DNA from: Klebsormidium nitens
Taxonomy: Eukaryota; Plantae; Klebsormidiophyceae
NCBI GenBank assembly: GCA_000708835.1
Contig: DF237433.1
Location: 6,322 to 70,321, forward strand
Length of the DNA stretch: 64,000 nucleotides
Direction of reading: 5' to 3'
The position numbers and the translations under genes were made by a program. Positions 754 through 64,000 of the stretch are shown one piece after another (the first letter of the stretch is position 1; the number at the start of each line of letters is the position of its first letter). The notes under the pieces are model-generated. The model was not told where the DNA came from and made no database searches. It saw only the letters and a list, made by a program, of their open reading frames with translations.

Positions 754-772
754 GGTAAGAATCCGGCCCAGC

Positions 773-1825: not shown

Positions 1826-1887
1826 TGAAGCGGCTTATTAATACTCATCCTCATAGATATCTTTTGTAAGATACACACCATCCCGGG

Positions 1888-5490: not shown

Positions 5491-5505
5491 GAGACTATAC
5501 ATATG

Positions 5506-8500: not shown

Positions 8501-10784
8501 CTTGAAAGGTTAACACAAGAGACGCATATTGGCTCAGGTCTGCATTATCGCGAAAGTTCTGCTTTCAAGAGGTTGACGTTGTAAGCAAACCTCGTGCACT
8601 TGTGACTGGGGGGCACCGAGGGGCGCACTGGCGGGGTCCCTCGAATTTGACTTCGTCCGCCAAATGGCCGAAGTCATGTTTTTCCAATTGGAAGTCCGTC
8701 CAACTTGGACAAACCTCTAGATCTTTTGACTTGATAGCAACTAGTCATAATGTTGTTTGAAGCACGGCTTACCCGCCGAAACCGAGAGGTTCTGTCGCAA
8801 AAACCAGAGGGGGAGCAGTTCTCGACTCTCGTACAATCGATCGCGATCGCTGTTCAGCGGAGAAGCGTCGGAATAAGCTGCGGCCACCGGGAAGCGAAGA
8901 CGCCCGAGTTTTTTGTTTCGCTTGCTGTCGCCAGTCTTGCACCGTTGGCTGTGGCATACGTAGGTGATCTCTGTTCCTCTTCTGAGCAGACCAAAATTGT
9001 TGCTGCTGTGCGGCTGCGCCCCCTCCTCTGCATACGGACACACCCGCCCTCCCACATCATTTCGCCAGTGGTACATCACGGCCCCAAAACCGGCAGCCGT
9101 GCTCGGCTCCGCCTTCGAGAAGACAGAGGAGTTGTCGCCGAAACTGCTGAGCATGCCTCGCATTGCCTTGACCACGTCTTGCTGCAGCTCAAGATCCATT
9201 AGGTCCGGCGCCTCAAATTCCGCATTGGCTCTCGCGCTAGGCACGGGCGCACTGGAAAGCTCGGGTGGCCCTTTCGAGCGTTGCCCAGAACGCCTCGACA
9301 CCCGCTCGTTGAGAATCTCGATCAACCAATTCGGGAGAGGGGGCAAATCTTTTGCTGGGGGGAGCTCGCCTCCTCCAACGACTAAATATCGTGCCGTCTC
9401 ACCGAGTCGCTCATATGACGACGGGGGGCATGCGATCATGCCGTTTGAGCTAACACCCCTCATGTCGACTCCCACCTTCTTCAAAACCGCCTTTCTAGAT
9501 TCCGGATCTCCGACTCTCAGCTCTAGCTTTGCAAAGTGGGTCGGTGTCTCCGCGCCCAGCCCCGACTCGAGACTTCTCTGATGAGAGAAGTAGATGTGCA
9601 CTCCCCCGCTGCCCGTGCGCACCCGGGGAGCATCAAACGCGCCGTGCTCGGTTTCCCAGAATGCTAGCTGCTCCATGCCCCTGTCACCGACGTCAAAGTC
9701 GAGCACGACAATTCCGGACGCTGCCGTGTTGATCAGCAGCGTGTTGTCAGAGGGGTGGAAGTAGCGGTTGATCAGGCAATTTGCTAAGGTAGATGCCGGC
9801 CAATCTCGTGGAGGAACCATGCATTTTTTTCCCTTCTTGGAGTTCCACTTGGTGTTTGCCGTGAATACCACATAGCCTTTTGCAACCAAGTCGCGAGCCG
9901 CAATCTCCTGCACAACAAACACAGGATTGTAACCTTGTTGAAAGCCTACCGCACAAGTTCATCTGACTATGTGACCACGACCGACGACTGCTAAGCCGAA
10001 CCAAACGTACGGGTAAATCTCAAAGTGTTGTCCCAACCGTGGTCGGCGAAATCGAAATCGCGAGCTACTTTCTCAAACTGCTGTCCCAGCCGTCCAAGCC
10101 GTCCATGAAGACGAGTTCGTAGATGAGACTTCCTCTACATGGACAGCACTCCCGTCCTTGGTCGGCAAAACCGAAAAGCAAGCTGCTTTTTTAAAGTGCT
10201 GTCCCAGCCGTCCAAGCTGTCCAAGAAGACAGCTTTGTAACTGCGACTCCCTGTAGATGGACAACACTCCTGTCCGCGGACGGCCTAGTCAACATCGTCA
10301 GCTATTCCGAAGTGCTGTCCATAAAGGGGAATTGAGTGAAGAGGGACGCTCCTTCAGCTGCACTCGAGTAAGTTCAACTCACCATTGCACTTGCTCCCAT
10401 CACTCTTTCTTGGTCCGCGAGACGATGGTTCTGAGCGGAATCAACCGGCAGTGGACAATCGTCCAGCATCTCCTTGTCCGATGCCGTCTCCTCGTCGTCC
10501 GTTTCAGAAGATTCGTCGTCCGCACCTTCGCAATTATCACCGCACTCTGATGAAGCCGAGTCGGAACTGCCCGGCCCCTGCATCCAAATGGTAATATTGC
10601 TGAGGCAGCCTGTCACAAAAGGCCCAATGCTTTCCGGAGCCGAACAGGTAAACTGCAACAGGTTTTCGAGAAGGCATGCCATTACAGCAAGGTGGGTGTC
10701 GCATAAAATTTTCGCCGCGGCTGACGAATTTCCTTCCTTAAACGGGTTTAATGTGACATATGGAAGCACGGCCCTTGGGAGCAA
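5506..10784 (-). CDS. Spliced Prim-Pol + Zn-binding + D5-like SF3 helicase (viral-type primase-helicase)
   Basis: Exons ...10383, 9907-8773, 8539-7863, 7536-7206, 6945-6797, 6108-5506. GT-AG introns 9908-10382, 8540-8772, 7537-7862, 6946-7205 and 6109-6796 are all phase-compatible. Junctions rebuild motifs: SAM|EIAARDL, PHHPK|FLWSF, PAEAG|LRNIRFAVCSET, FATTQL|HILCSNYPP. Also VVLDFD, TGSGGVHIYF, GVDMRG, WFYYDGSVW, Walker A GEGGAGKS, ALKRRL. The 5' end beyond ~10650 is unresolved. Confidence 0.85.
6200..6660. repeat. ~136 bp minisatellite (3+ units) inside helicase intron 6109-6796
   Basis: GGACGGCACAGACGGCTAGGACAGCAT recurs near 6206, 6342, 6477, 6618. Each unit has the mini-palindrome GGACAGC-TGT-GCTGTCC. 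Confidence 0.9.
10030..10330. repeat. Same minisatellite family, inverted, inside intron 9908-10382
   Basis: TGCTGTCCCAGCCGTCCAAGCCGTCCATGAAGACGAG...ATGGACAGCAC is the reverse complement of the 6200-6660 unit. Confidence 0.8.
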
Positions 10785-11259
10785 CTTGACTGGAGATGGG
10801 CAGATTGTGTTTGTTTACGACAGGCCTATCCAATCGGTGGAGGTTATCAAATTGGAGGGTCCAGACCAGCGCACCTGGGCCAAGGACGATGAAGACTTCC
10901 AAGATTCTAAAGGCTTGTCGCGTGCAGAACACAGCTACCCCTGAAGCCGCTCATTAGAAGATATCTTACACATCCTCCTTAGCTTCCAAAATTGTCTGAG
11001 ACGGCGACGAATAGACACACGCAACGATGCATCCTTACGCTAGCATCCTCTGCCCCCATCACTTTGATATTGGCAGTCGAGTGTGCTCCTTCAACCCGAC
11101 TTGCCGTCTGCTCGCTCGTCGCCCCTCCCTCATTCTCTGATTCGCCACTATGCTTGCGTTTTCGGCCCCGCGCCTGGCCCGCAACTTCCTGCATCAATCG
11201 CACACATCGTCACAAATCAGATCACACCGGATGATTAGCTTTTTCAAGGCCAATGACGG

Positions 11260-11650
11260 TGGCAAAGCCGAATCGAAATTGTGAGCTATTTCCGAAGTGC
11301 TGTCCGAACCGTCCAAGCTGTCCATGAAGACAAATTCGTAGTTGAGAGTTCCTCTAGATGGACAGCAGTCCCGTCCGCAGGCCGGCGAGGCCGGAATCGA
11401 TATTGTGAGCTCCTTCCAAAGTGCTGTCCGAACCGTCCATGGAGACGAAACTGTAGTAGATGGCGTCTCTCCATGGACAGCACTGCGGTCAGCGCTTGGT
11501 GGGTCTCTTTGGCGGCATGACTGTCGACAAGAAGAACTACAAGATTGGAAGATTCTGAAAGCGCTGTCCATGCTGTCCATGCCGTCCATGGACACGAAAA
11601 CTGTAGAAGATGACGCCTCTCCATGGACAACACTGCTGTCAGCGCTTGGC
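11260..11650. repeat. Same minisatellite family, inverted, about 3 units
   Basis: GTGCTGTCCGAACCGTCCA...GTAGATG...ATGGACAGCAC repeated near 11297, 11420, 11560. Shorter copies at ~12270-12350 and ~13135-13220. Confidence 0.8.
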
Positions 11651-13676
11651 AACATGGATGCATTGATTTCAAACCAATCTGACCTGAGGCGCAGATCCCC
11701 CCACTCTAATTGAAAAAGTAAAGCTCATCTCAAAGCAAACGTTAAGAAGATTACCCACCATCTGATCTGCTCGAAGCTCTCTTCTCTGGTCCGCACGACG
11801 ATGAGCATGGGCAGTTTCAACTGATGGGAGGCGGTTGTCACTGTTTCTAGCAGAAGACGCTGCTCGTTGCGACGAGGCTTTGGAGTCCTGCATGAAGGAA
11901 GTGCATGAAAGGTTGCCGCTTTTTGATTCCCAAAAGCTGGCACCAAAAAGTTGCAGGAATTGCCGGCCTGGATTACACAGCAGACCGCAAGAGCACGCTG
12001 CACCTTCTCGAGACTTCAAGCTATTCGTCGTAACTCGGGTATAGCTTTAAAATTCTGAACGTTGTGGCCAGTATCGTGTTGAAAGCGACTTTTTGCAGTG
12101 AACCCCACAAGGCTCACAAGGCAGACAACACCATCGTCCATCAAGACGGCCATTCTATTCAAAGAAACAGCCTCGGTGGACTGCACGGACAGCCAAGACA
12201 ACACTCTCGAAATCTCAAAGGATTTCAAACACTGTCAACGATCGTAGATTCTTAAGTCAGGACCGCGGAGCCGGACAGCACTGCCGTCCATGGAGACAAA
12301 AGTTATTTTAGAAAGTGTCTCCATGGACACCGCGGACAGCGTGGACAAGACTTTGCAAATTTCACAGAAAGCCACAATCCACTGAGTGGAACGAGATTTT
12401 AGTAAAAGTAGCTCGCTGGAACTTGAATCACCCAGAAGTAGGGATGCTTGAGGCGCCGGGGCTTCAAACAATTTGTAGCCAGTATTCGAGGCAGGAAAAA
12501 CTTTAAAGCAGTGCAATCACCTACAAAGAAGGGACCTGGCTGGGTGGCAAAGGGAGCTGTATTCTGCTTCACTGGGCCCCACATCGTGGACCAAGAAGCA
12601 AGCAGCACTTGGGGGACTGACCTTATCTACTGAACTCAAGACTCCATGACTGGCAGCGGTCTTCTCTAAAGTAGGCCCCCAGAAGATGAGTGTAGCAAAA
12701 CACGTACCTGCGCAACGGTTGCATGAGAAGAATGCACCATAACCTGCCCAGGGTCTTTTTCACCACCTGTTCCCTGAAACTTCTCCTTCGACATGACACA
12801 ATTTGGGAGCGCCGCAGCCTCTGATGCAGGGTGGTCGCCATTTACTAAGGCTCCATCTCCACCATTCATGAGTCCACTCAAGCACAGGGTTCTTCTCAAT
12901 GCTTTATCCGTTCCTCTAACAATGTTACAAATCAGACCCTTGAGGAATATCGCTCATGACGGAACTCTTCAATGCCTTCTCGCTTCTCATGCGAATGCAG
13001 ACCAAAGATTGAAAACTTTGCCGCCCTAGACAGCTGGAAGACAAGGTCACAAGATTATCACTACGGCGACTAGGCCCTTGGTGGCTAGCCCAACTAAAGC
13101 AAGATATTCAACCACTTTTTTGGAGAGTTGCGGGAAGTGCTGTCCGAGCCGTCCAAGCCGTCTACCTTAGCGGAACTTGTAGATGGACTCGACACTCGAT
13201 GGACACAGTGCTGTCTATGAAGACCTTGATCTGCGGGCTTGATATTCGGAATATTGAAGTTTTCAAGAACTCTGGGACTGTCGAGGCGCTCCTGTGGTTT
13301 TTGGATCTTAAGAAGTTGGAAATGAGGAAAGTTGGGAATGAGGATTTTGATTTGAAATTCTGGATTTTATAGGCTCGCAGACGGGCAGCTCCTGCGGTCC
13401 GGTCCGGTCTCCAGGCCACTCATGCGCGCACGTACGAGCCCCGAAAGGCCAGAATTTTCCCTCGGTCCGGTCCCGAGGCCACGTACAAGCCCCGAAAGGC
13501 AGGATTTGTATCGGACCGAAGGAGACACTGGGAAGGTGGCAAGAATGCTGAGTCGGGCCGAAATACGTACGCAGCTGCCACGTACGGCACGGCGTCTGCT
13601 ATTCGTCGGACCGTCCACCCCCAAGTTAGCGGGTCGGTTTGCCCATCCGGACCGTTTTTGGGGACCGAGGCGCGGT

Positions 13677-47192: not shown

Positions 47193-47229
47193 CAGTTGGC
47201 GCGACCTTGCATTCCCACCCAACCCAGCC
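47193..47229 (+). promoter_or_regulatory. 37-bp element identical to 55408-55444, upstream of polyprotein gene copy 1
   Basis: CAGTTGGCGCGACCTTGCATTCCCACCCAACCCAGCC is an exact match, followed by shared GCATAGGCTATG and CCGTTACC blocks. Confidence 0.6.
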
Positions 47230-47592
47230 GGGCACGTCTACCGGGCGCCCCGAAACCAACACCGTCTAGCATAGGCTATGAGCCAAAAGGGGCCCGGCGG
47301 GCTCACGCCATTCCGTTACCAAGCACTCAACAGACCATTCCCATCAGAAGGTTAACTTTGACATGATCCCCAGCATATGGAAGCTCTTCAAGAACGGGCA
47401 CAACTGAGCGGCTCTGGCTAAAGAAAAAGGGGACGCCTGTTTAGAGGAGTGCTTGCTAAGTTCTTCATGAGTGCGCACTGATAGGAGTGCATATCCAGCG
47501 AAGGTGCAAAGGTATCAGAAGTTGTGCATGCGGATGTTCTCAGATGACGGACTAGTCTTGGGTACAAAAGCTGGTCATCCAATCGTGTCGTG

Positions 47593-50500
47593 ATGGCAAG
47601 AGGCCGGCCTCATGGCCGGTCCAAGTCCGATCACAGAGTCTGCCAGGAGGCTCGTCATGCACGCGCTGCTGAGTACAGGGAGAGGATCGCCATCAGTGCT
47701 GAGCAGCAGGAGGCACGCATCGCTGCTGTGAATGCTAAGTGCAACGTGGAGGATGCCCCTCGTAGGCAGCGGGGGCAGAAGTCGAGGGAGTCAAAGACCA
47801 AGGCAGGGGCGGCTCGGATGTCCACAGGGGGCCGTGCTTGCAAAGCGTCTGGCAGTGGAAAGAAGAGAGCAAAGAAGGGCCTCGAACATGTGCTTGGCAG
47901 AGCTGCAGAAAGAGGTGAGTTCTTGTGCATGGCTGCTGGTTTGATTGGTTTGCCTTCTGAGGCCGAGGCCAAGCAGAAGCTAGGACGCTTTGCGCGAAAG
48001 GTGAATGGTGGGCTGGCTCTGTGATGTATACCAAGAAGAGCGTTTGTTTTTTAGTAGACTGATGGGCATTTTTTGGTACAATGCAGTCAGTCGTAACCTT
48101 GTTCCGACAGTCACATGGATGGCTGGCCTTGCATTGTTGTACCAAGAACAGTGCGCTTCTGTGTAGACATTGAAGGGAATGAACTGATACACATAAGTAT
48201 TGGTAGTACCGCTAGAAATGAAGGGTGCGGTTGGCTCTGCAGCTCTGTACCAAAAAAAGCGTGGTCTTAGTTTGGGAAGATTGCCCCGAGGCCTCCATTG
48301 TACCAGGAACAGTTTGCCTCCATTCACGAGCATAGTGACTGCTGGCTCTGCAAGAACGTACCAAGCTTTGCCCTTTTCTCATCAGAATATAAGATGCTGA
48401 TCTTGGTACATGCTGTCAAATCACAAAGTCCTAAACAATCATAGCGGGCATGGTTTCCCTGGAGTGTACCACAAACAGCCTCTTCCTCTTAGAGAAAGAA
48501 AGGCAGATTCTTGGTACATACTGGCAATGACAAACCTTCAACCCCACTGCCAGAAGAAAGAGACTTGACTGCAAAAGGCAGCGGTGACGCGGCACGCACC
48601 AAGTTTTGCATGCATCTCTAATCTTAGACTCCAGGTTCATTACCCAACCCTCGGCGCTTCTTCATTGCAGACTTGCACAGTCTCTACTGCCACGCGTGCG
48701 GCGCCCTTGCAGAGTTTGGGCTGAGGGGAGGCAAGGAGGGGGGCAGCGTCAAGTACACGTGCAGAGCGCACGCCACGCCGAATGGGTGCTTTCGGATCGA
48801 CCGAGTTCGTGCAGGTGAGAGCATCTGGGGAGCCTGCTGTTGACATGGTCTGAGATTCATGCAATGTTCGTAGCTGCTCCCCTCGGGTCAGCAACGTTTC
48901 TTTGAAGTAGAATGTTGATATTGACGTGCTCTAGACTCTCCTGCAGATTGGGCAGAGGGCCAAGAGTTGCGCCGCTTGAGAGCAGAGGAGAGAAGATTGG
49001 AACAGGAGCTGCGAAAGCTGGGAGGGAGCTCGTCCAATGCAAAACCAACATCTGGTGAGCGTGCGGTGCTGGTTTAGACATCTGACTGGTTTGGTTCTGC
49101 TCTTGTACACAATCTCAGAGCAGCAGGTTCCCTGTCATGCCTCCGATGCGTTGTTGCTCCTTCTGTGTGCATTCCACACGTGACTCAACAGTGACGGCAA
49201 CTCAACGCTTCACTTTTCGTTTCTGCAGCTGCAGTCGGGGATGAGTTTCAAAGTTCGGGGGTTTGGGCTTCGATGCCCATGAGCCGGTCGCTGATAGGTA
49301 AGGCATCTTCAATGCAGCTAAGGCAATGTAGTTGCTTCTAGAGCATCTCAGACCTGTCCTCTACGACGATCCTCTTGTTTTGCCCAGGGATCCTCCAATC
49401 CTTTCTTGTTGAGTCAAGCTGCATCCAGTATCTGGCTTGACAATGGGTTTCTCCTCACCTGCAGCCACGCTCTTGATGATCGGTGGCATCGAGCGTAATC
49501 CTGGACCTGCCGCAGACAAGGGGAGCCCGTACAAGGGAGATCTTGCACTTCCAGGCAGGACCAGCACAGGCTGCAACGAAGCGCCAGGAACTGTTGTTGA
49601 ATCTGATTGGCCCCTTAACCTGCTGCCCTCTCTCGACGTGAGCGTGAGTCTAGAAGTCTTTTTCTTCATGCAGTTCAGTTCTATGTCGCACCCAAGCCCT
49701 GGACTGAATCGTAGATTGTGTAAGCACGGAATATCTGCTGGCCGAGATGCCTGTGAACACTCGATGGTCTTAGTTTCATCGGGCTAAGGCGCGCAGGTAG
49801 CGAGAGCCGCTGGCGAGCATCACAGCTTAACAATCAGCAACCCTTACATCATGCTGCGCAGGAGGCTCATGGCAGTGGGCATTTCACCATCTCTCGTTTT
49901 GAAGGCTATCAATGGTTTCCTTGCAGGCGCTCAACCCAAGACACATGACTTCCGAGAACGGAAGAGTAACTCATGCAGGCAGGGGGCTGGACCTGTTGGC
50001 AGGGATTCCGGAACGAGGGGATAGCGAAGGCCAGACTCGTCAGCTACACCTGCGGCTACGAGGAGGAGCAGACGACGAGCCTATGCCCGAGGTACTTTGC
50101 CTCTCTCACAGACACTGCAGAGACAGGGGAGAAGAGCACTTGCAAGTTCAACGGTGTCCATCTGTTGTGACCACCTTGTACTTGCTGGAATGTAGTGTGT
50201 ACTTAAGAAAACACAGGTCAGACTGTGACCCTCTGCATCAAGGGTTTCTTAGGAGACACTTTCTTATTGTCCATTGCAGCACCTTGTGCCTCACACGCCC
50301 CTTGTAACCTTGCTCACAGCAACAGCTCTCCTCTGCAGGCCCACAGCGACAAGCCTGCCCTCATTCGAATCCAGCTGAGAGGTACCAACGAAAGATGCTC
50401 TTTTGAACCACCTCGCCCTCGAGAAGCAGTTCTGGAGCACCTAAGAGATGAGGAACGCTGGGGAGAAGGAAAGATCACAAAGGTGGTGGATGGGGAGGAG

Positions 50501-53500
50501 ACTGCTTGTATGAAGGGGGATGTGCTTCAAGCCGGCGAATATATCTTCACAGCATTCGAAGGTGAGCCACCACCAGTCTTGATTCCCAGGGGCGGAAAGA
50601 AGGAGAAATACATCCCTTACTAAGTCAGTGACGTCTCATTTGTGGTGCCCACTTTTGGCGCCTTGTAAGCACAACCTCTGCTTAGCATCTTCTAATTGCC
50701 AATCAACAGCAAGTCAGCTGGCGCTTATAAGAGCACTAACAAGGGGGAAGACCTGCTGCGGCACTAGGACTTCGTTCACTTTGGGGTTTCCTTTTGGGCA
50801 TAGTAAAGCTGTGACCTCGCGCAGAGACTTGCTGCAAAATCAAGGAACTGCTCACGCACCCTTATGCAGTCTTTAATTTACTAGGGTCTCCTTAGTTGAT
50901 AGATAAGCCCTATCGAGTGTGATTCAGAAGTATGTTTGACTTAGGCAAACCTGAGCAGCCAGAATGCAGGTTCAAAGAAGAGGCATGTCAATGTTTCACG
51001 TGTTTCACGACTTCTGCAGTCCAAGGAGCATCCAGTGCTGGACCTTCAGCCGCACAGGCGTCGAGGCTGGAGCCAACAGAAGGGGCCAAAGGTACTAGCC
51101 ACTCGGATATTGTCTGCCGAAATCGTTGTGGACCATAATTGCTTATCTGCTGAGAGGGGCTGTGATTGGGCATCGTAGGATTTTCCAACTGTTAACGTCT
51201 GCGAGCTTGACATCAAGGCAATTACTTAGTGGGCTGAAAAAGCTGAAGCTTTTTTGGAGGAGTGTCACTTGGTTGGGATACGAATGGGCTGACATAGGGG
51301 ACGCCTTTGTTTGAAAGCGCGCTTCTGCAGAAGTCACGATTTGCCTATCCTGCTAGGGTCTTCTTCACAACCCCTTGCTCGCGTCAGCATCGAAGGCCCC
51401 TTCATTCCAGAGCAGAGCTGGTTAGGGTGGCTCATTCGTATCCGCTTTAATGACCATACCTTATCTTTTTCTGGTTCAGGGGATCTCGGCCCTTCACCAA
51501 TCAAAAACTGGAAGGAGCGGGAGAAAGTGGTGGGAGACAAGATAGTAGAAGCCCACGAAGCGCTGGCGCATTGCATGGTTAACGAACCCGATTCCTTCAG
51601 AAGTCCGGTGACAAACGAGCACACAGAGCGCATTGGAGGCCTTAACATTGTGGCTGCCCCGCCGGACACCCCCCTGCTCCTTCTCACAAACCTGCCCTCA
51701 GGAAACCAAGGAGGAGTCGCCACAGATGATGAGGTGCTAAAGTGGTTTCACAAAGCCGACAATGAGCCGATTATTCCTCCCCCTACGGCTGTCCTGCTTG
51801 GGCCCCCAGGAATTGGCAAGACCCGGAAGTGCATGCAGCTGGGGTCAACTGAGCCTGGCGTCATTTACCTGACCTGTGAACGGAGTGGGGAGTTGAGGGC
51901 CCCTGACATGGAAGCTGTTCGCGCGAAGCTGGAGCAATGCGAGGCAGACCCGCAGTCTTGGAAGGCCAACTTTGTGCGTGCCAAGCGACACCTATTGGCG
52001 TGCCTGTATGCCCGGGTTTCCCTTCTCAAGTATTTCCTGGACAATCAGGCACAGCAGGCTTGGGACTTAAGGCACTGGATGCTCTTCCAGTCGGGAGTAG
52101 CGTTTGGCGCCTCAATGGTGAGCACAACAACCCAGCTTATAAGTGCTTCTCGGAAGATTGGCTGCGGAGGGCATCAGTTTTCAAGGCAACTGATAGGATT
52201 GTCAAACTGGTCCGTCCCAAGTGTGGACGCATCTACCTCCAAAGTCTGGCTGTACCTGCGTCTGTCGCTGTTCTGTCCAGAGAGGCAAGGAAAGTTGCTG
52301 CCAAGCCTCTCATCTCGTGTGTGGATGTCCACTCCAATTTGAGTGCCTTTGTTAGATTGCGCAGCAAAAAGCAAGCACGCTGCACATGTCTTCATGGCTG
52401 TGGAGCAGGAAGCAACTGCTCACATGCCCTTTGTTTCCGTGCCAGGCGCCCATGTTGGAACTCTACCGCTCTGCTAGCCTGGTGCATGTGGATGAGCTAG
52501 AGGAGCAGCTGGCAGCCTTGCTGGGAGAGTGCACCAAACTTCTTGGGGGCAATCGGCGGGTGTGCATTGCCTTGGACGAGGCGCAGTCCTGGTCGTCTGC
52601 ACTAAACCATTGCTTCTCCAATGGTAACGAGCCCCCTCAGGGTCGGCCGCTCCTGACTGCTGCCATGCGCATCCTGTCAGACCCGCCACTTTCCCAGCAC
52701 CTGAAGATCCTACTTGCGGGCACAGGCTTCTCGCTCCTGAGCACAAACATCATTGATTCCGCACTCGCGAAGCATGGCACGTTCAAAGCCCGGCAGTTGT
52801 CGCTTTTCAAAACCCTTTCAGAAGATGAGGTGCGACAATACGCGGCGCACTTTGCGGGCAAAGAAGAGGCAGATGGTGCGGTAGAACAGATCAGAAAGCT
52901 GGTAGGGCGAGCGCGCTTCGTTGTGGGGGCTGTTCAGCGTTGGGTGGGGGAGGGGGGGGAACGATCATTGAGGGATGTGCTTGAAGAAGAGTATGACCTG
53001 CACACGGACCCAGACGCGTGGCACCGCTCTACCCTGGTGCGAGCCCGGTACGAGAAGCTGTACCTCTACGGTACCTTGTGGGCGCAGGCTCAGCACCCTC
53101 AGTCGGCCAAGCTGTTTCAGCAGTTGAAGAAATTGACATTTGCGCATTGGGTGATTGGCCAGCCGGCATGCTTCCGGAACAAGGAGGAAGTAGACATTGT
53201 GAACCTTGGCTGCGCCCTTCTTGAAGGGGAACGGGATACTCAGATGGCGGCCATCAGGGAGCCCGTCGTTCAGACTGCAGTCCAAAATTTCCTAAAGCAC
53301 GAGATGCAGTGGGATCCACAGACGCACGCCGAAGAGATGTTCTGTGAGAGCGGCTTCCAGCCCCAAGTGCTCGGGAACTGGTGGGAGCTGGTTGTGGCGC
53401 AGTTCATCCGTCACATGTTCGAGACGGAGGAGGCGCTTGCCGACAAGCCGCTCTTTAGCAACCTAGGCCGTGACACGTTACCCCCTGCATTCAGGGAGAT

Positions 53501-54191
53501 GGGAGCCAGTCTGGTGGCGGTTTGGCGTGATGAAACCTCTGGGCAGTTCCGCTGGGAGGAAATCAAAAAGGAAGAGCGGTTTTTGAGAATGAAGGTTGGA
53601 ACCACCGCTTACAGGCTGGTTGACTTCCTGAAGGACCCTCAAGGATTTGTCCTCTTCTTCCCTGAAGACAAGGCGGGCCCCGATCTCGTCTTTTTCATGG
53701 TCGTGGGCGGCAAGCTCTTCCTCGTGTTCGTACAGCTCAAACTTGCGGTAGCGGTGAAAGAGCCCTTGAAGGTGATGCGTACCGTGGACCCCAGCACTGC
53801 TTACAGCAATCACCCCTTAGAACGTGAGTTTCGGGAGGAGATCAAGGAGGCGCTTGGGCCTGACAGTGGGCTTGCTGGCGTGATTGCGTGCATCATAGGC
53901 TACCCGCTTAAGTTGCCACAGTCTATCTTCGAGGAGGTCCGTGATTGCAAGCCGCCAAGGAGGGCCTCGAAGCGCCTGCAGTTGGAGGTGGTTGCGGACT
54001 ACGACATCTCGCCAGCCGTACGAGTCGTCGTCGATGGTAGCCAAAAGTCGGATGAGTTGGCGCGGACAGATCTGAAGCCCCTTATTGATGCACTGAAGAA
54101 GGCTGGGGCTGTCGAGACCGGTACCTCTCCGACTGAGGTGAGGCAATGTGCGCAAGTGCCGGCATGTCAAAGTAGCATGTGGGTGCGGTGA
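47593..54191 (+). CDS. Multi-exon Crinkler-type NTPase-REase protein with Cys/His finger, coiled coil, 2A-like and ubiquitin-tail-like motifs
   Basis: Exons 47593-47914, 48671-48814, 48947-49054, 49229-49297, 49465-49637, 49927-50091, 50339-50561, (51020-51091), 51357-52117, 52446-54191. All joins are GT-AG and phase-compatible (~1,240-1,260 aa). Walker A GPPGIGKT, Walker B IALDEAQ, GRPLL, LLAGTG, GRARF. REase-like LGNWWE and FFPEDKAGPDLVFF...FVQLK. Confidence 0.75.
47990..48560. repeat. Degenerate GTACCAAGAA / TTCTTGGTAC repeats in intron 1 of copy 1
   Basis: About 8 motif copies, same family as 56570-62740. Confidence 0.6.
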
Positions 54192-55407
54192 AAAGGGGAA
54201 TGAAGGTGCGTCCTTAGGAGTGCCGCTGTGGGGTTGGCGGCTTCTGGATAGCCTCCAAGAGTGTCAACGATTCTATGTCACGCGCTTTCAAGCTGAGATT
54301 GCATTAGCATTCCGGTGCTTGCATTACCATGTGGTAGAAACTCTTTTTATGAACATCAGCATCATCCGTCCATTCCTTTCTATACAGGGATTGAGCAGCT
54401 CTACCCCCATGGACGTGAGCTGATTGCCGCAAGTGAGGAGTCCGGGCAGAGACCAAGCGCCTAGATAACTTAGGCAACATGAATCGAGACATTCTCTGAA
54501 ATGCGCGTTCCATGGACCAAGAGATGCTAAAACCGATTCTCAATGATGGCCCCAGTCCTTGCAATCAGGACAAGACGTATGTACATCTGGTCATGCCAAC
54601 GAGCCTTCATCTTGCATCCCTATGGAGCCCCGCATAGGTTTGGATTGGGGTGCATGAGTCTCATGAACCAATTTTGGCCTCTTTACTCTGGACAGAGGCC
54701 ATGCATCTAGACAACATGCATGTGCTTGTAGCTGACTTTTGCAATCAATGATAACAAAGAATAGTGAGTAGGAAACATCTGACAGCAGTATGTGACTGGG
54801 TAAGGCACTAGGTACATCAGCAAGGAGCATCATGATTAAAGGGTATTTCGAGTAGGCTTAGCTACAACCGCTACTTCAAGTTGCAAACATTGCCTGTGTT
54901 GGAGCACATGGCACCGTTTTGCTCAACTCAACGGGGCTTATGCAACCCGAGCCTAATAGCGTGAAAAGGTTACCGCTTCGCTTTGCGCGTCATGATGGCC
55001 TTGCAAAATCGTCGCTGAACCATGCAGTAGTTGACGAGCTGTGATGCATGTATAGAACAGCCCAACAACGTGTAGTACTAAGCATCATTGCACGCTCATC
55101 AGATATATAAGTTGAGCTTTGCATGGTTCAGGACGCCAGTAAGCGCGCTTGCGAGAGTTACCGGAATGCTTAGCATCTTCACGATCGATACTGGTCTGAA
55201 TCTGAGCCTTCACCGGTCACCGGAGCGCCTGCCCGGATATCGCCCTTTCGGCAAAGCATATGCGCCATGAGAGCCAGCACAGTCACCATACTCATCCGAG
55301 CCATTCCCGCTCACTCTGAGTCGGGCAGCTAGTTGCCAGCGATTCTGAGGTCAGTGGCGTATACTGCAATATCCTCAGCATTTTACATGGTATGGCCGGT
55401 AACAGGT

Positions 55408-55444
55408 CAGTTGGCGCGACCTTGCATTCCCACCCAACCCAGCC
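55408..55444 (+). promoter_or_regulatory. Second copy of the 37-bp upstream element
   Basis: Exact match to 47193-47229, about 620 bp before ATG 56064. Confidence 0.6.
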
Positions 55445-56063
55445 CGGTCAGTCTACCGGGCACCCAGGGGTCGGACCCTCGCGCATAGGCTATGTGCCAT
55501 AAGGGCCGGGACCAGTCGTAAAGGCCCCGTTACCATCCAGACCGTGACCGTTCCCGCCGGGGTCCGACTGCACAGTCTGCATGGCCGAAGGTGCCACCTC
55601 TAGTCTCCAGCTCCCAGCATTCTGCAACTTGCCTTCAGAAAGCTGAGTAGGACAGCGACAGGTTGACCTTGCAAGTTGCATGGGCGGAGCTGCGAGCAGT
55701 GAACAAGCGCCGACCTAAGTTTTTTCAGGCATCGAGTGAGTGATTGTGCTGGCAGCTGTCCCCGGGCAAGGAGCTCATGCATTTCATACCGAGGAATTTC
55801 TTCAATTGTTTGTTATGTTAAATACTGTCCACTGCTGGCATTGCAAGAGGAAAGCATGAGTGGTGTGCAGGATAGGTGTTTGTTCAGCACACCTGTGGGA
55901 CTGCAAGCTTTGAGACCAGGCATTCTGCTCCGCTTCTGCTTCAAGTTTGTAGGTTGTCCTAAAGCTGTGGGTCTGCTCTCAGCTGAAGCTGAGCTTCTGT
56001 TGCTGTGAATTGAGAGCGTGTTTGTAGCTGTGATTACTGGGCAGAGCTGGCGCTTGATAGATC

Positions 56064-59000
56064 ATGGCGCGAAGCCGGCCTTGCGGTCGGTCTAAGTCTG
56101 ATCACAGGGTCTGCCAGGCTGCTCGCTTTGCACGAGCTGCGGAGTATAGGAAGCGCGTCGAAATCAGTGCAGAAAGGCAAGCGTTTCTGATCGCTGCTGT
56201 CAATGCGCAGAGCGATGACATACCTGCCCCTGGCCGCCGGCGGTGCCAAAGGTCAGAGCGATTGAAGAATGAGGGGCAGCCTGCTCGTAAGGGTTTACTT
56301 GGCCGGCGCTTCACCGCTGCTGGCCAGAAAGCAAAGCGGCAGGATCCGCGAGTACTCAAAGATGTTTTAGATTGCGTCGCGGAACACGGTGAGCAGAAGG
56401 CAATTTGTTTGATTCTTCAAATGCCAACTCTTAAGGTCAGGGGATATTTGATTGCTGGCCCTGCAAGCAGGTGTATCAAGGCTTGTTCTAACTTCTTCGA
56501 GTAACAGTAGGACATCTAGAGATCTTTTGGTTTCAGGAAAGGTGTGTTGTTTAGAACTTCGGATTCACAGTGGGTCAGAGATTCCGCAATCAACGCCAAC
56601 CAGAGAAACTTTGGTGGCATGGCTGGGCGTGTGTAGAGAAGTGTACCAAGTTCTGGCCAATTCTTTCTAAAGATAACAATAGGCCATTTCTTGGTACAGC
56701 GCCAGAAGTTGGTGGCATGGCTGGGTGTGCGTTGAACATGGTACTAGGTTTGAACCACTTATTCTAGAAGAGAACAATGGCGCCAAAAGCTTGAGGCAGG
56801 ACTGGGCATGTGTAGGCAGCAGTATCAAGAGTTGACCAGTTAACAATGGATCATTTCTTGGTACCGCGCCAAGACTTGATGGCATGGCTGGGCGTGACTT
56901 GGGAATGTACCAGGTTTTGACCACTTATTTCCAAACATAACAGTGACACCAAGAGTTGATAGCATGCCAAGGCGTGCACACGGAAGTGAACCAAGTTCTG
57001 ACCCGTTCTTTCTCGAGATGATTATGGGTCACTTCTTGCTACAGCTCCCAAAACTGATGGCATGGCTGGGAAGTGTACCAAGTTCCGGCCAATTCTTTCT
57101 TTAGATAACAATGGGCCGATTCTTGGTACAGCGCAAAAACTTGATGGCGTGCCCGGTTCTGCAGGCAGGTGTATGCGGTAGGAATAATAGCCCTGATTTT
57201 CTTTGCCTTCATCTCTTTTCCAGACCCACATGGCATCCATTGCTGCGAGTGCAATACGGCCGCAGAGTTTGGGCTTCGTGGGAGCAAGAACGGAGGGAAC
57301 GTCAGATACTGTTGCGAGCGCCACGGCCCAACGGAGGGTTGTTTCCATATCGACAGGGATCGCACAGGTAAGAGGAGAGACACACACCTTGCTTGTGCGC
57401 AGAAAACCCGCCAAGTCAACCTTGATCGTGCAGGTCTTTGCATAGCTGCAGCCCGTGGCAGCCTCCCATTGAGCGTGCCATTTCATCATTGCAGCATGGG
57501 TTCAGGGCCGCGAGAAGACGCGACGGAAGGCAAACGCTGCCTGTCTGGAACGCGAGCAGCATCGGAAGGGATCTGGGTCACTTGCTGCTCTTTGGTCACG
57601 GCCAGCAACGGCAGGTGAGCGCCCAGAATTGTCAAAGGGACTGGATTCAAGATTGTGCAAGGCCGAAGGTCGCATTCTCGCTTGCGTGCCCAAGCTGCCG
57701 ATTGAAGGTGATTGTCTTGGGTCACGCGACCAGATGAGTTCTGAGACTCTCTTGTTTGTGAGGTTGGGCAACTCATCTTGCGGGTTCGGCTGGCTTTAGA
57801 GCTCAGCAAGCACGTGTACCAAGAAACAACCTCTTACTTCCTAACAATTCTACTGGGCGTTTCCTGATTCATCTTGCTGTTCATGGCCGGGCCAGTGCAT
57901 GCCCTTGATCTGCCGCACAGTTTCAACGACTTCTGCAGGGTGTTTGGCAGTCGATCGTGACATCTACTGGCGCATAACGTAGTGCTAACCCACTGTGCGC
58001 CTCCTCTTCAGGCTCATCATGTGCTGACCGTGACGCCCTTAGAACTCGCCATGCCGCCACAGCCAGCCGCGGGACGACCAGAGAAAACTCCGAGTTGGAG
58101 TGCAGTCTTGGCTCAAGCCGCCATCAGTACGCCGCCAGCTTGGTCACAAATGGGGCGCAGCGCGGGGAGCCTTCCGTCCGCTGCGCAGTACGGGAGGGAC
58201 AGTGCGCGCTGTTGAGCAGGAGCGCCAGGTTTGAGGTGCAGTCGTCGGGGGAGCCCATCGCCACAAGCAGCTATCGTCCAGTGCTGCAAGGTACCAAAAA
58301 GTAAAGTCTTTCATTTCGAAAAACTTCAAGGGCGGTTTCTGGTACATCCTCAGGGGTATGGCAGGGCCCATCGAAGTGCACCCCATCAGCCTGTACCAGA
58401 AAGTAACGTCTTTCTTCTTAAGAATCTTAAGGGGGTTCTTTTGGACATTCTTGTGGGTTATGGCCGGGCTTGCTGGGCCCTTCAAGCACAGTCTCTTTGA
58501 GATTCAGGAATATACCAGAAAGTGGCGTCGTCTTCCTTAAGAATTCAAAGGGCGTTTCTTGGTACATCCTGCGGGGTATGGTCGGGGCGTATTGCAGGAT
58601 ATGGTCGGGCCTATCAAGTGCAGTGTCTCTTGAAGGGAGTGTACCAGAATTTGGCATCTTTCGCTTTGAGAATCTCATGGGCTTGATGTGTTACGTTCCG
58701 CCTGAGGCCTTCAATCAGGGATTCATGCAGCACGAGCAACCTTTCTAACGCACTGTGCACATTTCTTTCAGAGACTTCCTCGTGCGCCGGCCGCAACGCC
58801 CACGACACCCACGCCGGCAGGCCCTCCCCCACTGCCACAAACCCCCTTCGTGCAAACGTCAGCGACTCCTCAGAGCGGGAGCCCGACGCAGGCGGCCATG
58901 AATGCGCCGCCAGCTGCGTGAGCGACGGCAGCGCTCGCAGCCTCCTGTGCACCACCCGTACTGGGAGGGCCTTCTTTCGATGTCAGATGGGAGCGCTAGG

Positions 59001-62000
59001 CCTGGGATTTTGCAGAGGCTGCCCACTGCCACAGACAGCCCTCACCCTGTGCTGGTCACCAGGACGATCAGGAGCCGATTGCAAGGTGAGAGACAAGTCT
59101 CGTACAGTTGCTGCAGTGTCTTCTCTCGGCACACCAACAGCACTAAGCATCAACCTTTACGGCTTTGGTAGTCACGATTCTTGGCACAACCCAGACAATT
59201 CGTGGGCAGGATGTGGCGTCTTTCTTCTTGACAACCCTTCGGGTGGTTCCTACTAACGTTCTTTAAGGTATGGCAGGGCCCATCAGCGTGTACCAGAAAG
59301 TAATGTCTTTCTTTCTAAGAACCTTAATGGGCGTTTTTTGGTGCATCTTGGGTGGTATGGCCGGGCTTGCACCATCAGCCTGTACCACGAAACGATGTGT
59401 TACTTCTGAAGAATTCTCCTGGGCGTCTCCTGGTACACAAATCTTTCCGGGTATGGCCGGGCAAAGTGCATGCCCTTGATCAGTCACACAAATCCGAGGA
59501 CTATCGGAAGGTATCGAGTGTGACATCCCGAGTGCAGCACTTCTGACCCATTGAGCGCCTTCATTTCAGAGTCCTCGCGCGCTGACCGCGACGCCTACAA
59601 CAGCCCCCGCACAATCGGCCCCAGTGCCATCGCCGGCGGCCCCAAGTCGGACTGCGGTCTTGGCCCAGCCCGCCATCAGCACGCCGGCAGCAACGAGGCG
59701 CAGCCCGGGCAGCCTTCCGTCCACCGCGCAGAGGGACCATCATGCGGGGGCGCCAGGTTTGGGGTTCAGCGCACTGCCACGAAGAGCGTCCTGATGAGGA
59801 GCGCAGTCCAAGGTGAGCGACAACTTCTCCTTTCACCACCGTATCCATGCCTGTCATTCCATGATAGAGTCAAGCGGTGCTGGGAAGTGGCACGTCTTTC
59901 CTCTTGGTCATCAAAAGCCGGGACAGATGCTTGGCGTTTTCTGTTAAATCTTGGCAAGTACGGACGGGGCCCCTCAAAAACGGTGTGAGGCTTTGCAGAT
60001 TGCGGGGGTGTGTACCAAGAAAGGCTGTATTACTTCTTAAGAATCAATTGGGCGTTTTCCGGTACATCCTGCGGGGTATGGTTGGGGCCCCTCAAAGATC
60101 ATGCGGGGTATGGTCGGCCCCTAAAACGGTGTGAGGGTTTGCAACGTGAAGGGGCCGTGTACCAGGAAACATTGTATTACTTTCTTAAGAATCTAATGAC
60201 CGTTTTCTGGTACATCCTGCAGGGTATGGCCGGCCTTGCCCATCAAGCGCACGATCCGACCATCCAGCACACAATCATCGTGTACCAGAAAACGCTGTAT
60301 TACTTTCTTAAGAACCTAACGGGCGGTTTCTGGTACATCCTGCAGGGTATGGCCGGGCACCCCCGAAAATGGTGTGAGGTTTTGCAGCGTATGGAGGCGT
60401 GTACCAAGAAACGCTGTGTTACTTCCTTAAGAATCTAATGGGCGAATCCTGGTACATTCTGGGGGGTGTGGCCGGGCTCGCAGCACCATGAGCAATGTTG
60501 CACAAAGTGGCGTCTTTGCCGGGCATGAGCCGGACAGCTTGCATGCTCTTGATCTTTGGGGCGGATTTTGAGATTCACGAGCCGCCGTGCTGATCCATTG
60601 CGCAGGATCACAAGGCACTGGCGTCCACGACGCGCGCCATGCAGACAAGCCTTCCGCCGCTGCCGCGACTCGCCCCACTTTCGACCCCTCAGAGCACGAG
60701 CGCGTTGCCGCCAGCTTGAGCAACGACGAGGCGCGGTGTGCGCAGCGCCCCGCACGTGAGGGCCGTTGCGCGCCGTCAGACAACCTCCGACCGGGGCGGT
60801 TTCCTGCCACGAGCAGCCGTCGTACGGCGCTCAGCAAATCGCAAGGTGAGCGTGTAGCAATCCCTTGCGCTGCACTAAGTTGCTCAGGCATCGGTTCACT
60901 GATGGCACGAAGCATGGGACTCAACCTCTGTCACTTGCTGGCATGCATCGGGTGCGTTGTCAGTATGCACCAGGAGGTGGCGTATTTCTCTTTGAAGATT
61001 TAAATGAGGCTCTTTCCTGGTACATCCTTGGAAGTGTGGGCGGAATAGCGCGCCGGGAGGTGGCGTGTTTCTCTTTGAAGAATCTAATTGCCCTTTCCTG
61101 GTACATCCTCAAGTGTACGGCCGGGCTGCCGGCGGTGTCCCGAGCCACTTGGGCACACTCATGCGCTCCAGAATTGAAGGCAATTGTTCCGAGTCACGCA
61201 ATATCAGGAGGGGTTCCAAGCGGCGCCCCAAAAGTAGTATACAAAGGAAAGCGTTCTGTGGTGCGTCAGTTCTGCTTCTCATCAGGAACGTGTACCAAGA
61301 AAGAACCTAATACTTCTTTACAAATGGGCGTTTTCTTGGTACACCTTGCTGGGTATGGTCGGGGCAAAGTTCATGCCCTTGATCCGCACGAATCCGAGGA
61401 CTTCCGCACGGATTTAACTGTCAATCGTGACGTTCACAAGTGCAGCAGTGCTGACCGACTGTGCGCCTCCTTTTTTCAGGATCAACGTGCACTGACCGCG
61501 ACGCCCACAACATGCGCCACGCCGCCGGCAGCCCCTCCACAACCGCCACAGCCAGCCCCCGTGCGTCCGGTGACAACTCCGAGTCGGAGTGCTGTCTTCG
61601 CGCGGGCCGCCATCAGAGTGCCGCCAGCTTGGTCACCGACGGGGCGCAGCGCTGGCAGCGCGCTGAACGGGAGGGACAGTGCGTGCTGTCGAGCCGGAGC
61701 GCCAGGGTTGGGGCTCAGTCGTCGAGGCAGCCCACTGCCACAAGCAGCCATCATCCGTTGTTGGTGAGGAGCGGACTGCAAGGTGAGCCTTCTCCACGAT
61801 CCCCGGCCGTCTGGTTGCGGCAAAGTCCTCTTCTCGATCAGTTGAGAGTTCTTGGCTCAACCTAGGGGAGTATCATGGGAAGTGGGATCGTTCTTCTCAA
61901 CAACGTGGCGCTCGTGAAGAACCTTACGGGCGTTTCTCCTGTACATACTACAATTTTCCTGGTCTGGCGGGGCTGCCCATCAAGCACACAGTCTGGTGGT

Positions 62001-64000
62001 ACTTGGTGGTACTTAGAAAGGCCGTATTCCTTTAAAAATCTAATGGGTGTTTCTTGGTACACGAACCTTGCGGGGTATGGCCGGCCCCTTGAACGGTGTG
62101 TGGCTGTTTCAGCACACAGAGAGAGAAGTTTCATGTACCAAGAAACGCTGTGTTATTGTTTAAGAATCTATTGGGCGTTTCCTGGTACATCCTGAGGGGT
62201 ATGGCCGGGTTCATTTCGGGGGGTATGGCCGGGTGCATTTCGGGGGGCATGGCCGGGCTGGCCCGTCAAGCGCAGGGTACGACCATCCGGCGCACAATGA
62301 GAGTGTACCAAGAAATGCTGTATTACTTTCTTTAGAATCTAATGGGCCTTTTCTGGTACATCCTGCAGGGCATGGCCGGCCTTGCCCATCAAGCGCATGA
62401 CCCGACCATCCGGCGCACAGTTGACGCGTACCAAGAAACACTGTGTTACTTTCTTAAGAATCTAAGGGGCCTTTCTTGGTACATCCTGCAGGGTGTGGCC
62501 GGACATCCCAGCACAGTCAGAGTGTACCAAGAAGAGGCGTATGACTTTCTTAAGAATCTAAGGGGCCTTTCTTGGTGCATCCTGCAGGGTATGGCCGGCC
62601 TTGCCCATCAAGCGCATGACCCGACCATCCGGCGCACAGTCGGCGCGTACCAAGAAACACTGTGTTACTTTCTTAAGAATCTAAGGGGCCTTTCTTGGTA
62701 CATCCTGCAGGGTATGGCCGGACCCTTCAAAACGGTGTGAGCCTTTGCCGCGCTGCGAGCGTTTCTTTGTAAGATCCCGCATGTCTGCAGGACCGTTGAA
62801 ATTGTGGCAGGTCTCTCAACTCTTACCTGCCAACCTTCTGCTCGCGCAGGATTTCCAGCCTACGGATGCGGGTCGGACAAGGTCTTCTACTCTTCGGCAC
62901 CAAAGAGCAGGGCACTGATAGGTATGGTGGCAGATCTCTGGCATTCTTTGGCAAGAAGAGGCTTCAATTGGCTTTGCCGACAGGACAGCGAATGCATGGG
63001 TCTGACTTGAAGGCTTGCCATTCTGAGCACGATTAGACTTTGAATGCGTGAGTCTGGCTTGAAGGGCATGCCATTTTTGAGCACGATTGGTTAACGGATT
63101 CGTTTGGTGCGATGCAGCGACGCAACTGATGATCGGGGGCGTGGAGAGCAACCCGGGGTGGCCCACACACGATCCCGACGCCCCGAGCAGCTCATGCGGG
63201 CGGCCCCTTATTCACCTCCCGACCACGGAGGTAAGTTATTTGCCAGGCAAAGATACTTTCTGCCTCATGCCTCCATCCAAGGATCACACGAAGTACCGCA
63301 AGGCTACAACTTGTGCCACTTGCCATAATCACCATGCCCCTTCTCACCGGCATCCACAGAGCGTCGATATAGACCGGGTGATTCATGTATGACGTATTCA
63401 TGTCATGCAGGAGGTTCAGAAGAGCGTCAGGTCAAAGCCAGTCAGCACCGAGCCGTTCGATGCGTGGCGAGCAAGCGTGAGTTTCAGTTGCTGTCGCGGT
63501 CCGACGTGTGTGAGATGCTGTCATTGAGCACGCTCATTCGTTTGCAGCCATGCATTTTCAGAGCTGGCATATGGGAAGAGTCAATGCACTGGGTGTTGAC
63601 TCGTGCATTCCTTGCTCATTCAGCAATTGAACCCAAACTGGGTGGCAGAGGTGATGGCCCGATCCCCAGTTCAACCTGCTCAACCCCAGTTGAAGGACCC
63701 GCCGACAGCGCCAAGCGTCAGTAGAGAGGTCAGTGCCCAGATCAACAATCCTCAACTGCGGCACGGCAGATGCGCTTGGAAAGCTTGCATTTGAACTCCT
63801 CAAATCTGCCCACTTTACTGCTCATAAACTCGTCGAAGAATTCAATAACATCGTCGCTCGACCAGGCCTCGAACCCCCCCGCTTGCATGAACCATCGAAA
63901 CAGCCACGGCCAGGATAGATCCCTTGGGTCGTTGCATGTGCCCCTCTTGTAGAGGCGTGTGATTGCACATGCGGCTGCATCCTGGAAGCTCGCTGCTGCC
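56064..64000 (+). CDS. Paralogue (copy 2) of the 47593 gene with amplified exons, continuing past the right edge
   Basis: Exons 56064-56388, 57224-57367 (144 nt, as in copy 1), 57495-57614, repeat exons 58012-58290, 58772-59085 (frameshifted), 59570-59812, 60606-60845, 61480-61782, then 62850-62921 (SRALI) and 63118-63230 (ATQLMIGGVESNPGW). Confidence 0.65.
56570..62740. repeat. Intron-resident palindromic minisatellite: TGTACCA(A)GAAA...CTTAAGAATCTAATGGGCG..TTTCT(T)GGTACATCCTGCAGGGTATGGCCGG
   Basis: More than 20 copies in clusters at 56570-57130, 57800-57900, 58290-58700, 59270-59470, 59980-60480, 60960-61380 and 62000-62740. Each unit has ~11-bp inverted arms around a ~30-bp spacer. Confidence 0.9.

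Follow-up and report, generated by a model that had tools for sequence, protein, structure and literature searches.

We describe here a gene of the streptophyte alga Klebsormidium nitens that lies at positions 47593-54191, on the forward strand, of a 64,000-nucleotide stretch of contig DF237433.1 (assembly GCA_000708835.1, positions 6,322 to 70,321), hereafter called the window. This focal gene is an intact, transcribed Klebsormidium gene. It joins in a single open reading frame (ORF) a leader with a Cys/His finger and a probable coiled coil, a 2A-like peptide, the remnant of a ubiquitin domain, and a nucleoside triphosphatase (NTPase) followed by a nuclease of the restriction endonuclease (REase) type. 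In the reading that we consider probable, the 2A-like peptide would act by ribosomal skipping (StopGo) and split the ORF into two proteins, a leader and a nuclease protein. An earlier interpretation made from the letters of the DNA, hereafter the sequence-only reading, had proposed a self-processing Crinkler effector carrying two release signals, the 2A-like site and a ubiquitin tail cut by a host protease.

The focal gene consists of ten GT-AG exons that join in phase into 3,666 nt encoding 1,221 amino acids, with no internal stop codon; nine or ten such exons and about 1,240 residues had been proposed earlier. The splice sites match the consensus, with acceptors ending in cag and donors beginning with gtgag, gtaag or gtact. 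The parts of the gene are as follows.

47593-47914, + strand: exon 1, start codon and basic Lys/Arg-rich leader (amino acids 1-107), from the in-phase model
48671-48814, + strand: exon 2, zinc-ribbon-like finger C-x2-C...C-x2-H, HSLYCHACG...KYTCRAH...GCFRID
48947-49054, + strand: exon 3, heptad-like Arg/Leu/Glu-rich stretch ELRRLRAEERRLEQELRKLGG, read as a probable coiled coil; the block is conserved in all paralogues
49229-49297, + strand: exon 4, ending in WASMPMSRSLI, N-terminal part of the 2A-like peptide; both junctions in four RNA runs
49465-49520, + strand: 2A mini-exon part of exon 5, (A)TLLMIGGIERNPGPAADK, with the predicted StopGo point between G228 (49503-49505) and P229 (49506-49508)
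49521-49643, + strand: rest of exon 5, a former intron now exonised (GSPYKGDLALPGRTSTGCNEAP...LDVS), from DNA alignment with the paralogues
49927-50091, + strand: exon 6, C-terminal half of a ubiquitin domain with LRLRGG (50050-50067), then ADDEPMPE
50339-50561, + strand: exon 7, small header; strand and helix order b-b-a-b-b-(a)-b in a single-sequence AlphaFold2 (AF2) model, pLDDT 63
51020-51091, + strand: exon 8, low-complexity Ala/Ser/Gly linker; RNA supports both junctions
51480-52117, + strand: exon 9, N-terminal part of the P-loop NTPase, Walker A GPPGIGKT at 51800-51823
52446-54191, + strand: exon 10, Walker B DEAQ (52575-52586), GRxRF, winged helix, PD-(D/E)xK nuclease and stop codon
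53385-53387 (E), 53676-53684 (GPD) and 53733-53741 (QLK), + strand: nuclease residues of exon 10, from an alignment of 28 sequences

RNA contigs of the Logan collection, from four public runs, were aligned to positions 47500-53499. GT..AG joints were present at eight of the nine introns, among them 47914/48671 in a contig of run X2 and 49054/49229 in all four runs. Single contigs of 1.9 kb (record 9 of run X14 and record 17 of run X9) begin in exon 3/4, cover exons 5-9 and reach exon 10 without mismatch, so that one mRNA carries both the 5' exons and the NTPase exons. The exons bearing the 2A site, LRLRGG, the header and the P-loop (Walker A) are found together on individual contigs, and the 2A-like peptide sits in one continuous mRNA frame with coding sequence on either side. 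The share of sampled words found in the RNA runs (0.5-0.6) equals the exon share of the stretch occupied by the gene. The full-length product was not found in protein collections, which held only a 265-amino-acid fragment from Logan, 96% identical. At the 3' end a possible additional intron and short exon 11 were noted (54137/54138 and 54388-54423): GAG/GTGAGG follows codon 564 of exon 10, two RNA contigs stop at 54138 (by arithmetic), and a candidate acceptor at 54387 would give the in-frame end ...SPTE-GLSSSTPMDVS followed by a stop codon.

These contigs also bear on the idea of a wrong join between two genes, one with the 5' exons and the other with the NTPase-REase exons, an outcome that would have undone the sequence-only reading. 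RNA depth on exons 1-3 is 10-30 times that on exons 4-10, and the joint between exons 2 and 3 was not seen, as could be the case for two genes. However, the contigs with GT..AG joints that connect exon 3/4 through exon 10 contradict it, and the depth of locus-specific joints is even in runs X1/X2, with 84 for exon 1-2 and about 110-150 from exon 3-4 onward. The high-depth contigs, which match focal exons 1-3 (47600-47700 and 48700-49100) at 95% or more, come from a paralogous transcript, as shown by C>T changes at 47643 and 47656 and by their divergence at 48777. We consider a wrong join extremely improbable. The paralogue-specific bases in these contigs indicate that a much more highly expressed leader-bearing paralogue exists. 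The change at 47656 gives H22Y, as in the paralogue KFL_008300050; it is uncertain that KFL_008300050 is the sole source of this RNA, its exon 1 being 97.5% identical over the first 40 nt only and 60-88% thereafter.

The 2A-like peptide TLLMIGGIERNPGP is encoded at 49467-49508, and the codons of GGIERNPGP occupy 49482-49508. The sequence-only reading had placed this motif correctly, and QLHLRLRGG almost so (50041-50067, against 50044-50067). GIERNPGP (49485-49508) agrees with the accepted 2A core octapeptide, (D/G/C/N)(V/I)ExNPGP, in which G is as common as D at position 12 among RNA viruses (PMC12846837). Upstream of the core lies a Leu-rich hydrophobic segment, SRSLIATLLMIG, kept as S[RK]SLIATLL in the paralogues, and its ATLLMIG resembles the LLxxxG of the classical 2A peptides E2A, F2A and P2A tabulated in a recent preprint (bioRxiv 10.64898/2026.06.17.732966, hereafter the 2026 preprint). 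The window contains two matches to the DNA pattern for GG[VIM]ExNPG (49482 and 63135), and 100 shuffles contain none; a scan for ExNPG in positions 1-13369 gave no site.

The family contains ten 2A-like sites in our tally, nine read in sequence and one taken from the 2026 preprint. Conservation in homologues mattered to the sequence-only reading, and for the 2A it was found, as six of the ten sites keep G[VI]ExNPGP. The site of KFL_008300050, GLESNPGP, has L at position 13. That of a tandem paralogue in the window (gene B, below), GGVESNPGW, has W at position 19 or is a split site; W at this position is a rare viral variant with about 90% activity (PMC12846837). The codons for the invariant G, E, N, P and G of the core vary among the copies in their synonymous third bases, which argues that selection acts on the peptide. 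One family member, K. nitens GAQ93188.1, carries the same leader and is annotated only as an AAA+ ATPase domain protein; its peptide SQLLIATLLNIGGVEPNPGP, identical to the focal one at 15 of 20 positions, was classed as 'skipping' in a human-cell reporter (bioRxiv 10.64898/2026.06.17.732966, Table S7). Judged from its sequence and from this relative, the 2A reading of GIERNPGP is well supported, and the site, already pointed out in the sequence-only reading, appears genuine, conserved and probably active. That reading knew of no earlier description of the arrangement. The architecture is indeed not described in the 2026 preprint, but the 2A peptide of the paralogue is listed and assayed there; we found no paper pairing Klebsormidium with 2A-like sequences in its main text. 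Table S7 of the same preprint also scores as 'skipping' the 2A-like peptide SRAIIEILLLRSGIEKNPGP of K. nitens GAQ92643.1, a tyrosine-recombinase protein.

The leader, comprising the zinc ribbon, the coiled coil and SRSLIATLL..GG[VI]ExNPGP, recurs in at least seven paralogues. The leader search returned the K. nitens proteins KFL_008300050, KFL_006010010, KFL_002470030, KFL_000380150 and KFL_010330010. Its family-wide motifs are HSLxCxxCG...KYxC..H...GCFR.D, the heptad-like ELRRLRA..RRLE.EL, and W.SMP.S[RK]SLIATLL..GG[VI]ExNPGP, whose beginning, W.SMP.S[RK]SLI, is the conserved end of exon 4. The Cys/His columns of exon 2 are invariant across the paralogue alignments; no Pfam match above threshold was obtained for this exon (Imm31, at E 0.095, fell below it and was not used), and its Atlas features lean towards a GRF-type zinc ribbon with a score of 0.65 only, which is a lead. 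Exon 1 is 69% identical in amino acids to the N-terminus of KFL_008300050. Between these two proteins the leader as a whole is 69% identical and the NTPase-REase module 31%, and KFL_002470030 has the same leader with a different downstream module. Conservation of the leader in the paralogues ends four residues past NPGP. The family is lineage-specific and is built of a conserved leader of about 230 amino acids and a variable second part.

The border between these two parts coincides with a small exon. The acceptor of the 2A exon has one and the same position in the six DNA copies, within a split Ala codon ahead of TLL. In three K. nitens paralogues a donor, GAG/GTGAGC, lies four codons past NPGP, so that the 2A forms a mini-exon of about 60 nt. 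In the focal gene the GT of this ancestral donor is now GG (49521-49522), and exon 5 reads through the former intron to a new donor at 49643, the junction 49643/49927 being present in RNA; the coding sequence at 49521-49643 aligns to the intron of the three paralogues. At the DNA level the focal locus and that of KFL_008300050 are homologous, in introns as well as exons, over a segment that begins 23 nt 5' of the ATG and breaks off about 65 nt past NPGP (49573). Such an abrupt end is as expected from intronic recombination or exon shuffling. Two other members show repeated units: in KFL_010330010 a coiled coil, a 2A (GVESNPGP) and a helical header of about 70 amino acids occur together twice in tandem, and KFL_000380150 has a pair of decayed units with CVECNPGL and GIEFSSGPGP. 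Tandem duplication therefore affects whole 2A-header units.

The second signal of the sequence-only reading, the ubiquitin tail, fared less well. The sequence LRLRGG is derived from ubiquitin, since KFL_008300050 carries a 2A-like site and a complete ubiquitin ending in LRLRGG. In that paralogue the 2A-like site is followed by a CCHC knuckle and then by a complete ubiquitin-like domain (MQVFVRT...LLLRLRGG/GDD), interrupted by an intron near residue 32 and matched by Pfam ubiquitin at E 3.6e-5 and 23.9 bits, just below the 25.4-bit cut-off. The two motifs thus co-occur in a second gene, a check that had been suggested earlier. Exon 6 of the focal gene corresponds by homology to the exon for the second ubiquitin half in KFL_008300050 (tblastn E 0.007), and its PDB sequence matches are ubiquitins only, weak (E 0.28-5) and ungapped to about residues 41-76 with the GG in register. 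The focal gene keeps only about residues 33-76 of ubiquitin and lacks a complete beta-grasp fold upstream of the GG. No relic of the first-half exon was found in its intron 5, nor any trace elsewhere in the gene, and the approximately 40 residues before the ubiquitin half are exonised intron. For this reason a whole ubiquitin-like domain between the 2A site and LRLRGG was rejected. An N-terminal ubiquitin half in exon 5 was also rejected: its local alignment was weak (score 70, about 4 standard deviations over the shuffle mean, one of 300 shuffles reaching 89), and the DNA shows an exonised intron at this place.

Because only the C-terminal half of ubiquitin remains, preceded by exonised intron, cleavage by a deubiquitinase appears doubtful in the focal gene. 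A scheme with two active steps, StopGo between G228 and P229 and then a deubiquitinase cut between G321 and A322 that would yield a 900-residue header-NTPase-REase protein with an N-terminal Ala, is in our view unlikely. It draws on the complete ubiquitin (near-threshold in Pfam) downstream of a 2A-like site in the paralogue, and on the LRLRGG and the acidic DD, which are identical in the two genes while the rest of the exon is about 28% identical; this better conservation leaves some room for a function. The tail is moreover followed by Ala (LRLRGG/A, 50050-50070), or by Gly in the paralogue, and not by Pro. Set against this are the replacement of the first-half exon by exonised intron, the residues equivalent to Ile44, Phe45 and Val70 (Thr, His and His in the ungapped alignment) and the presence of the tail in just two family members. 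In addition, most deubiquitinases need the folded body of ubiquitin and cut bare LRGG peptides poorly.

Downstream of the tail, the header encoded by exon 7 is possibly a beta-grasp (ubiquitin-like) fold, as suggested by its model and by Atlas features that lean towards Rad60-SLD, ubiquitin and TmoB, all with scores below 0.9. Foldseek gave no match for this low-confidence model, and neither Pfam nor PDB gave a sequence match. Searching each exon piece of the gene in Pfam yielded only a weak AAA_22 hit, on exon 9, which is homologous to K. nitens, chytrid and Rhizophagus proteins. Walker A (GPPGIGKT) and Walker B (hhhhDEAQ) are both present. For exon 10 an AF2 model built with 27 homologues (pLDDT 77) was compared with known structures by Foldseek and VIA-align. 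Its NTPase fold matches archaeal AAA+/STAND/ORC-type NTPases (2fna, Z 8.4, and 2qen), NLRs, CED-4 and Apaf-1. Residues 183-288 match many winged helix-turn-helix domains (Z 5-7), and residues 290-550 match the REase folds of Card1, MspJI, AF1548, HamA, McrC and BspD6I with modest Z scores of 4.9-5.3. Of 28 sequences, 24-27 retain the Walker B DEAQ, GRxRF, E314, GPD413 and Q430-x-K432. Exon 10 has few homologues, 45 among 1.84 billion representatives. These come from Klebsormidium nitens, the chytrid Rhizophlyctis, Rhizophagus, two basidiomycetes and a fern, and differ in their N-terminal heads (TPR, SAM, CCCH). The C-terminus ends in the nuclease and carries no repeat sensor (LRR, TPR or WD40) of the STAND/NLR type. 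The Atlas neighbours of the module are clusters named Crinkler family protein (0.93-0.98). By its folds and residues the C-terminal part thus combines an NTPase of STAND-like type with a winged helix and a PD-(D/E)xK nuclease and comes close to modules of the Crinkler type, and in this respect the likeness to CR C-termini proposed by the sequence-only reading is borne out.

The same does not apply to its proposal of a Crinkler effector, as nothing indicates secretion. The N-terminus of the protein is basic, the Crinkler header family PF20147 had no Pfam match in the exon pieces, no hydrophobic signal-like N-terminal stretch was seen by eye on either predicted product, nor an LxLFLAK-type motif in the protein, and Klebsormidium is a free-living alga. 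Rather than being a secreted effector, the nuclease protein most likely has an intracellular role in the alga, as an NTPase-nuclease of conflict or defence. The NTPase, helix-turn-helix and REase architecture has been described for Crinkler C-termini (Zhang et al. 2016, summarised in PMC5289972), and the focal protein resembles these CR/CRN modules by its P-loop NTPase, winged helix and PD-(D/E)xK nuclease behind a small variable header, by its relatives in Rhizophagus, chytrids and a fern, and by its Atlas clusters. It differs in that these effector features were not seen in it, by the free-living host, and by the addition upstream of a 2A-terminated leader and a ubiquitin remnant, neither of which we found described for CR proteins in the architecture summarised in PMC5289972.

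In the mechanism that we favour, the ribosome would skip the bond between G228 and P229 and free a leader of residues 1-228. It would then either resume, giving a 993-amino-acid nuclease protein that starts at Pro229, or fall off. Two proteins would thus come from one mRNA, the leader being at least as abundant as the nuclease, and falloff at the 2A could keep the nuclease scarce. The LRLRGG tail would be a relic of a complete ubiquitin, with a second cut after G321 possible but not expected. Of this scheme, the action of StopGo in living cells, the ratio of the two products and the functions given to leader and nuclease are inferred from the features described above. Several observations weigh against this interpretation. 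The junction between exons 2 and 3 (48814/48947) was not seen in the RNA contigs of the four runs and is placed by phase, splice consensus and ungapped homology to a paralogue only. The leader has no Pfam match (VapB on a paralogue leader, at E 0.023, was below threshold and not used), and a pattern search combined with tblastn found no leader relatives outside Klebsormidium in metagenome and viral contigs. Both 2A-like copies of KFL_000380150 are decayed, so that the signal appears dispensable in some members. The Arg at the variable position 15 of the focal 2A is absent from the virus-favoured residues listed in PMC12846837. Finally, the sole assay in the family concerns a 20-mer of a paralogue in human cells, and a similar peptide of unrecorded origin, KRSLIAMLLTIGGVESNPGP, was scored 'falloff only'.

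This last result bears on a less probable but serious alternative, in which the 2A is mainly a translational brake: most ribosomes would release the leader and fall off, leaving the leader as main product and the nuclease in traces. Many eukaryotic 2A-like peptides give falloff or less protein instead of clean skipping, KRSLIAMLLTIGGVESNPGP is of the family type, and strong attenuation would suit a potentially toxic downstream nuclease. Nevertheless, the only peptide assigned to the family was scored 'skipping', the class labels stem from a human-cell screen, and the conserved catalytic residues of the NTPase and REase show that the downstream protein is under selection. It is more improbable still that no processing occurs and that the gene encodes one 1,221-residue fusion in which both motifs are without activity, left over from a captured exon of viral or retroelement origin and from a decayed ubiquitin. 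The decayed 2A copies and the visible decay of the ubiquitin in the focal gene would fit this, as would the rarity of StopGo in cellular genes (PMC12846837), but six sites have kept the G[VI]ExNPGP core whole although synonymous change is saturated, the conservation of the leader peaks at, and stops with, the 2A motif, and the peptide of the paralogue is active in the assay. The splitting of the ORF into leader and nuclease by StopGo is therefore preferred to either. As to its purpose, we put forward tentatively, and as an unlikely but attractive idea, that the leader-2A cassette is a portable safety catch for dangerous enzymes, by which each ribosome about to produce the nuclease, or another NTPase module in paralogues, would first make and release a finger/coiled-coil partner that restrains, localises or activates the enzyme. 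If true, eukaryotes would have here, within a single ORF, a counterpart of toxin-antitoxin or effector-immunity pairs, and shuffling through introns would have carried the 2A mini-exon from gene to gene.

Natural fusions of ubiquitin with ribosomal proteins, and the cellular ubiquitin inserted upstream of NS3 in cytopathic pestiviruses, offer one comparison. They share with the family a ubiquitin ending in RGG in frame before another protein, an arrangement that KFL_008300050 fits. They differ in that the focal ubiquitin is cut down to its C-terminal half and that cleavage is hypothetical here; in KFL_008300050 the ubiquitin would moreover stay on the C-terminus of the upstream CCHC-knuckle segment. 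Another parallel is given by the 2A peptides of sea-urchin NOD-like receptors (Roulston et al. 2016, PMC4981915), where a StopGo-type peptide also lies in a cellular gene ahead of a STAND-class NTPase, within a multigene family. These 2As are, however, at the extreme N-terminus and double as signal sequences, whereas the focal 2A stands behind a finger/coiled-coil protein of about 210 amino acids, in its own mini-exon, ahead of varied downstream modules and in a plant lineage. StopGo-type peptides have also been reported in other cellular non-retroelement genes, encoding death-domain, RapGEF and ankyrin proteins (bioRxiv 10.64898/2026.06.17.732966).

The 2As of non-LTR (long terminal repeat) retrotransposons (Odon et al. 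2013, PMC3708506) belong to the same class, LLxxxG[DG][VI]ExNPGP, and are likewise tied to nucleic-acid-binding coiled-coil proteins and nucleases in multicopy elements. Some 2As of the retrotransposon proteins ORF1p and ORF2p are found in green algae and some beside deubiquitinase domains (bioRxiv 10.64898/2026.06.17.732966), so that ubiquitin-system domains also occur nearby in algal elements. In contrast to these elements, the focal gene has no reverse transcriptase or APE endonuclease and contains nine spliceosomal introns; its 2A follows the coiled coil, theirs precedes it, and its enzyme is a STAND-like NTPase with an REase.

The family is a rare case of a StopGo-type signal in intron-rich, transcribed and spliced nuclear genes of a streptophyte alga, and its 2A mini-exon stands precisely where the conserved leader meets the interchangeable NTPase-nuclease modules. 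It shows how exon shuffling can spread a recoding signal. The variants at positions 12 (G), 13 (L) and 19 (W), together with the decayed copies, form a ready comparative series, and KFL_008300050, with its complete ubiquitin, allows two processing devices to be compared within one family. This makes it a tractable system for asking why one ORF should be split, be it for control of stoichiometry or for attenuation of a toxic nuclease. With the focal gene, the Crinkler-type NTPase-REase proteins also gain a branch in the plant lineage that is probably intracellular.

The tandem paralogue, gene B, has the same leader and was delineated by blastn, tblastn and motif scan.

56064-63230, + strand: gene B, extending past the end of the window
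56064-56384, + strand: exon-1-like exon of gene B
57223-57366, + strand: zinc-finger exon of gene B
63117-63230, + strand: 2A exon of gene B (ATQLMIGGVESNPGWPTHD...)

Over 56064-64000, gene B has extra exons and long, repeat-filled introns, and its downstream module lies beyond the window. A 99-nt block at 47193-47291 is 82% identical to 55408-55505; the two copies are located about 300-650 nt 5' of the start codons of the focal gene and gene B and may represent a common promoter or 5' untranslated region element. The introns of both leader genes are filled by tandem units of about 96-123 nt (48000-48560 and 60900-62750), which contain a hairpin core, GTACCAAGAAA...TTTCTTGGTAC.

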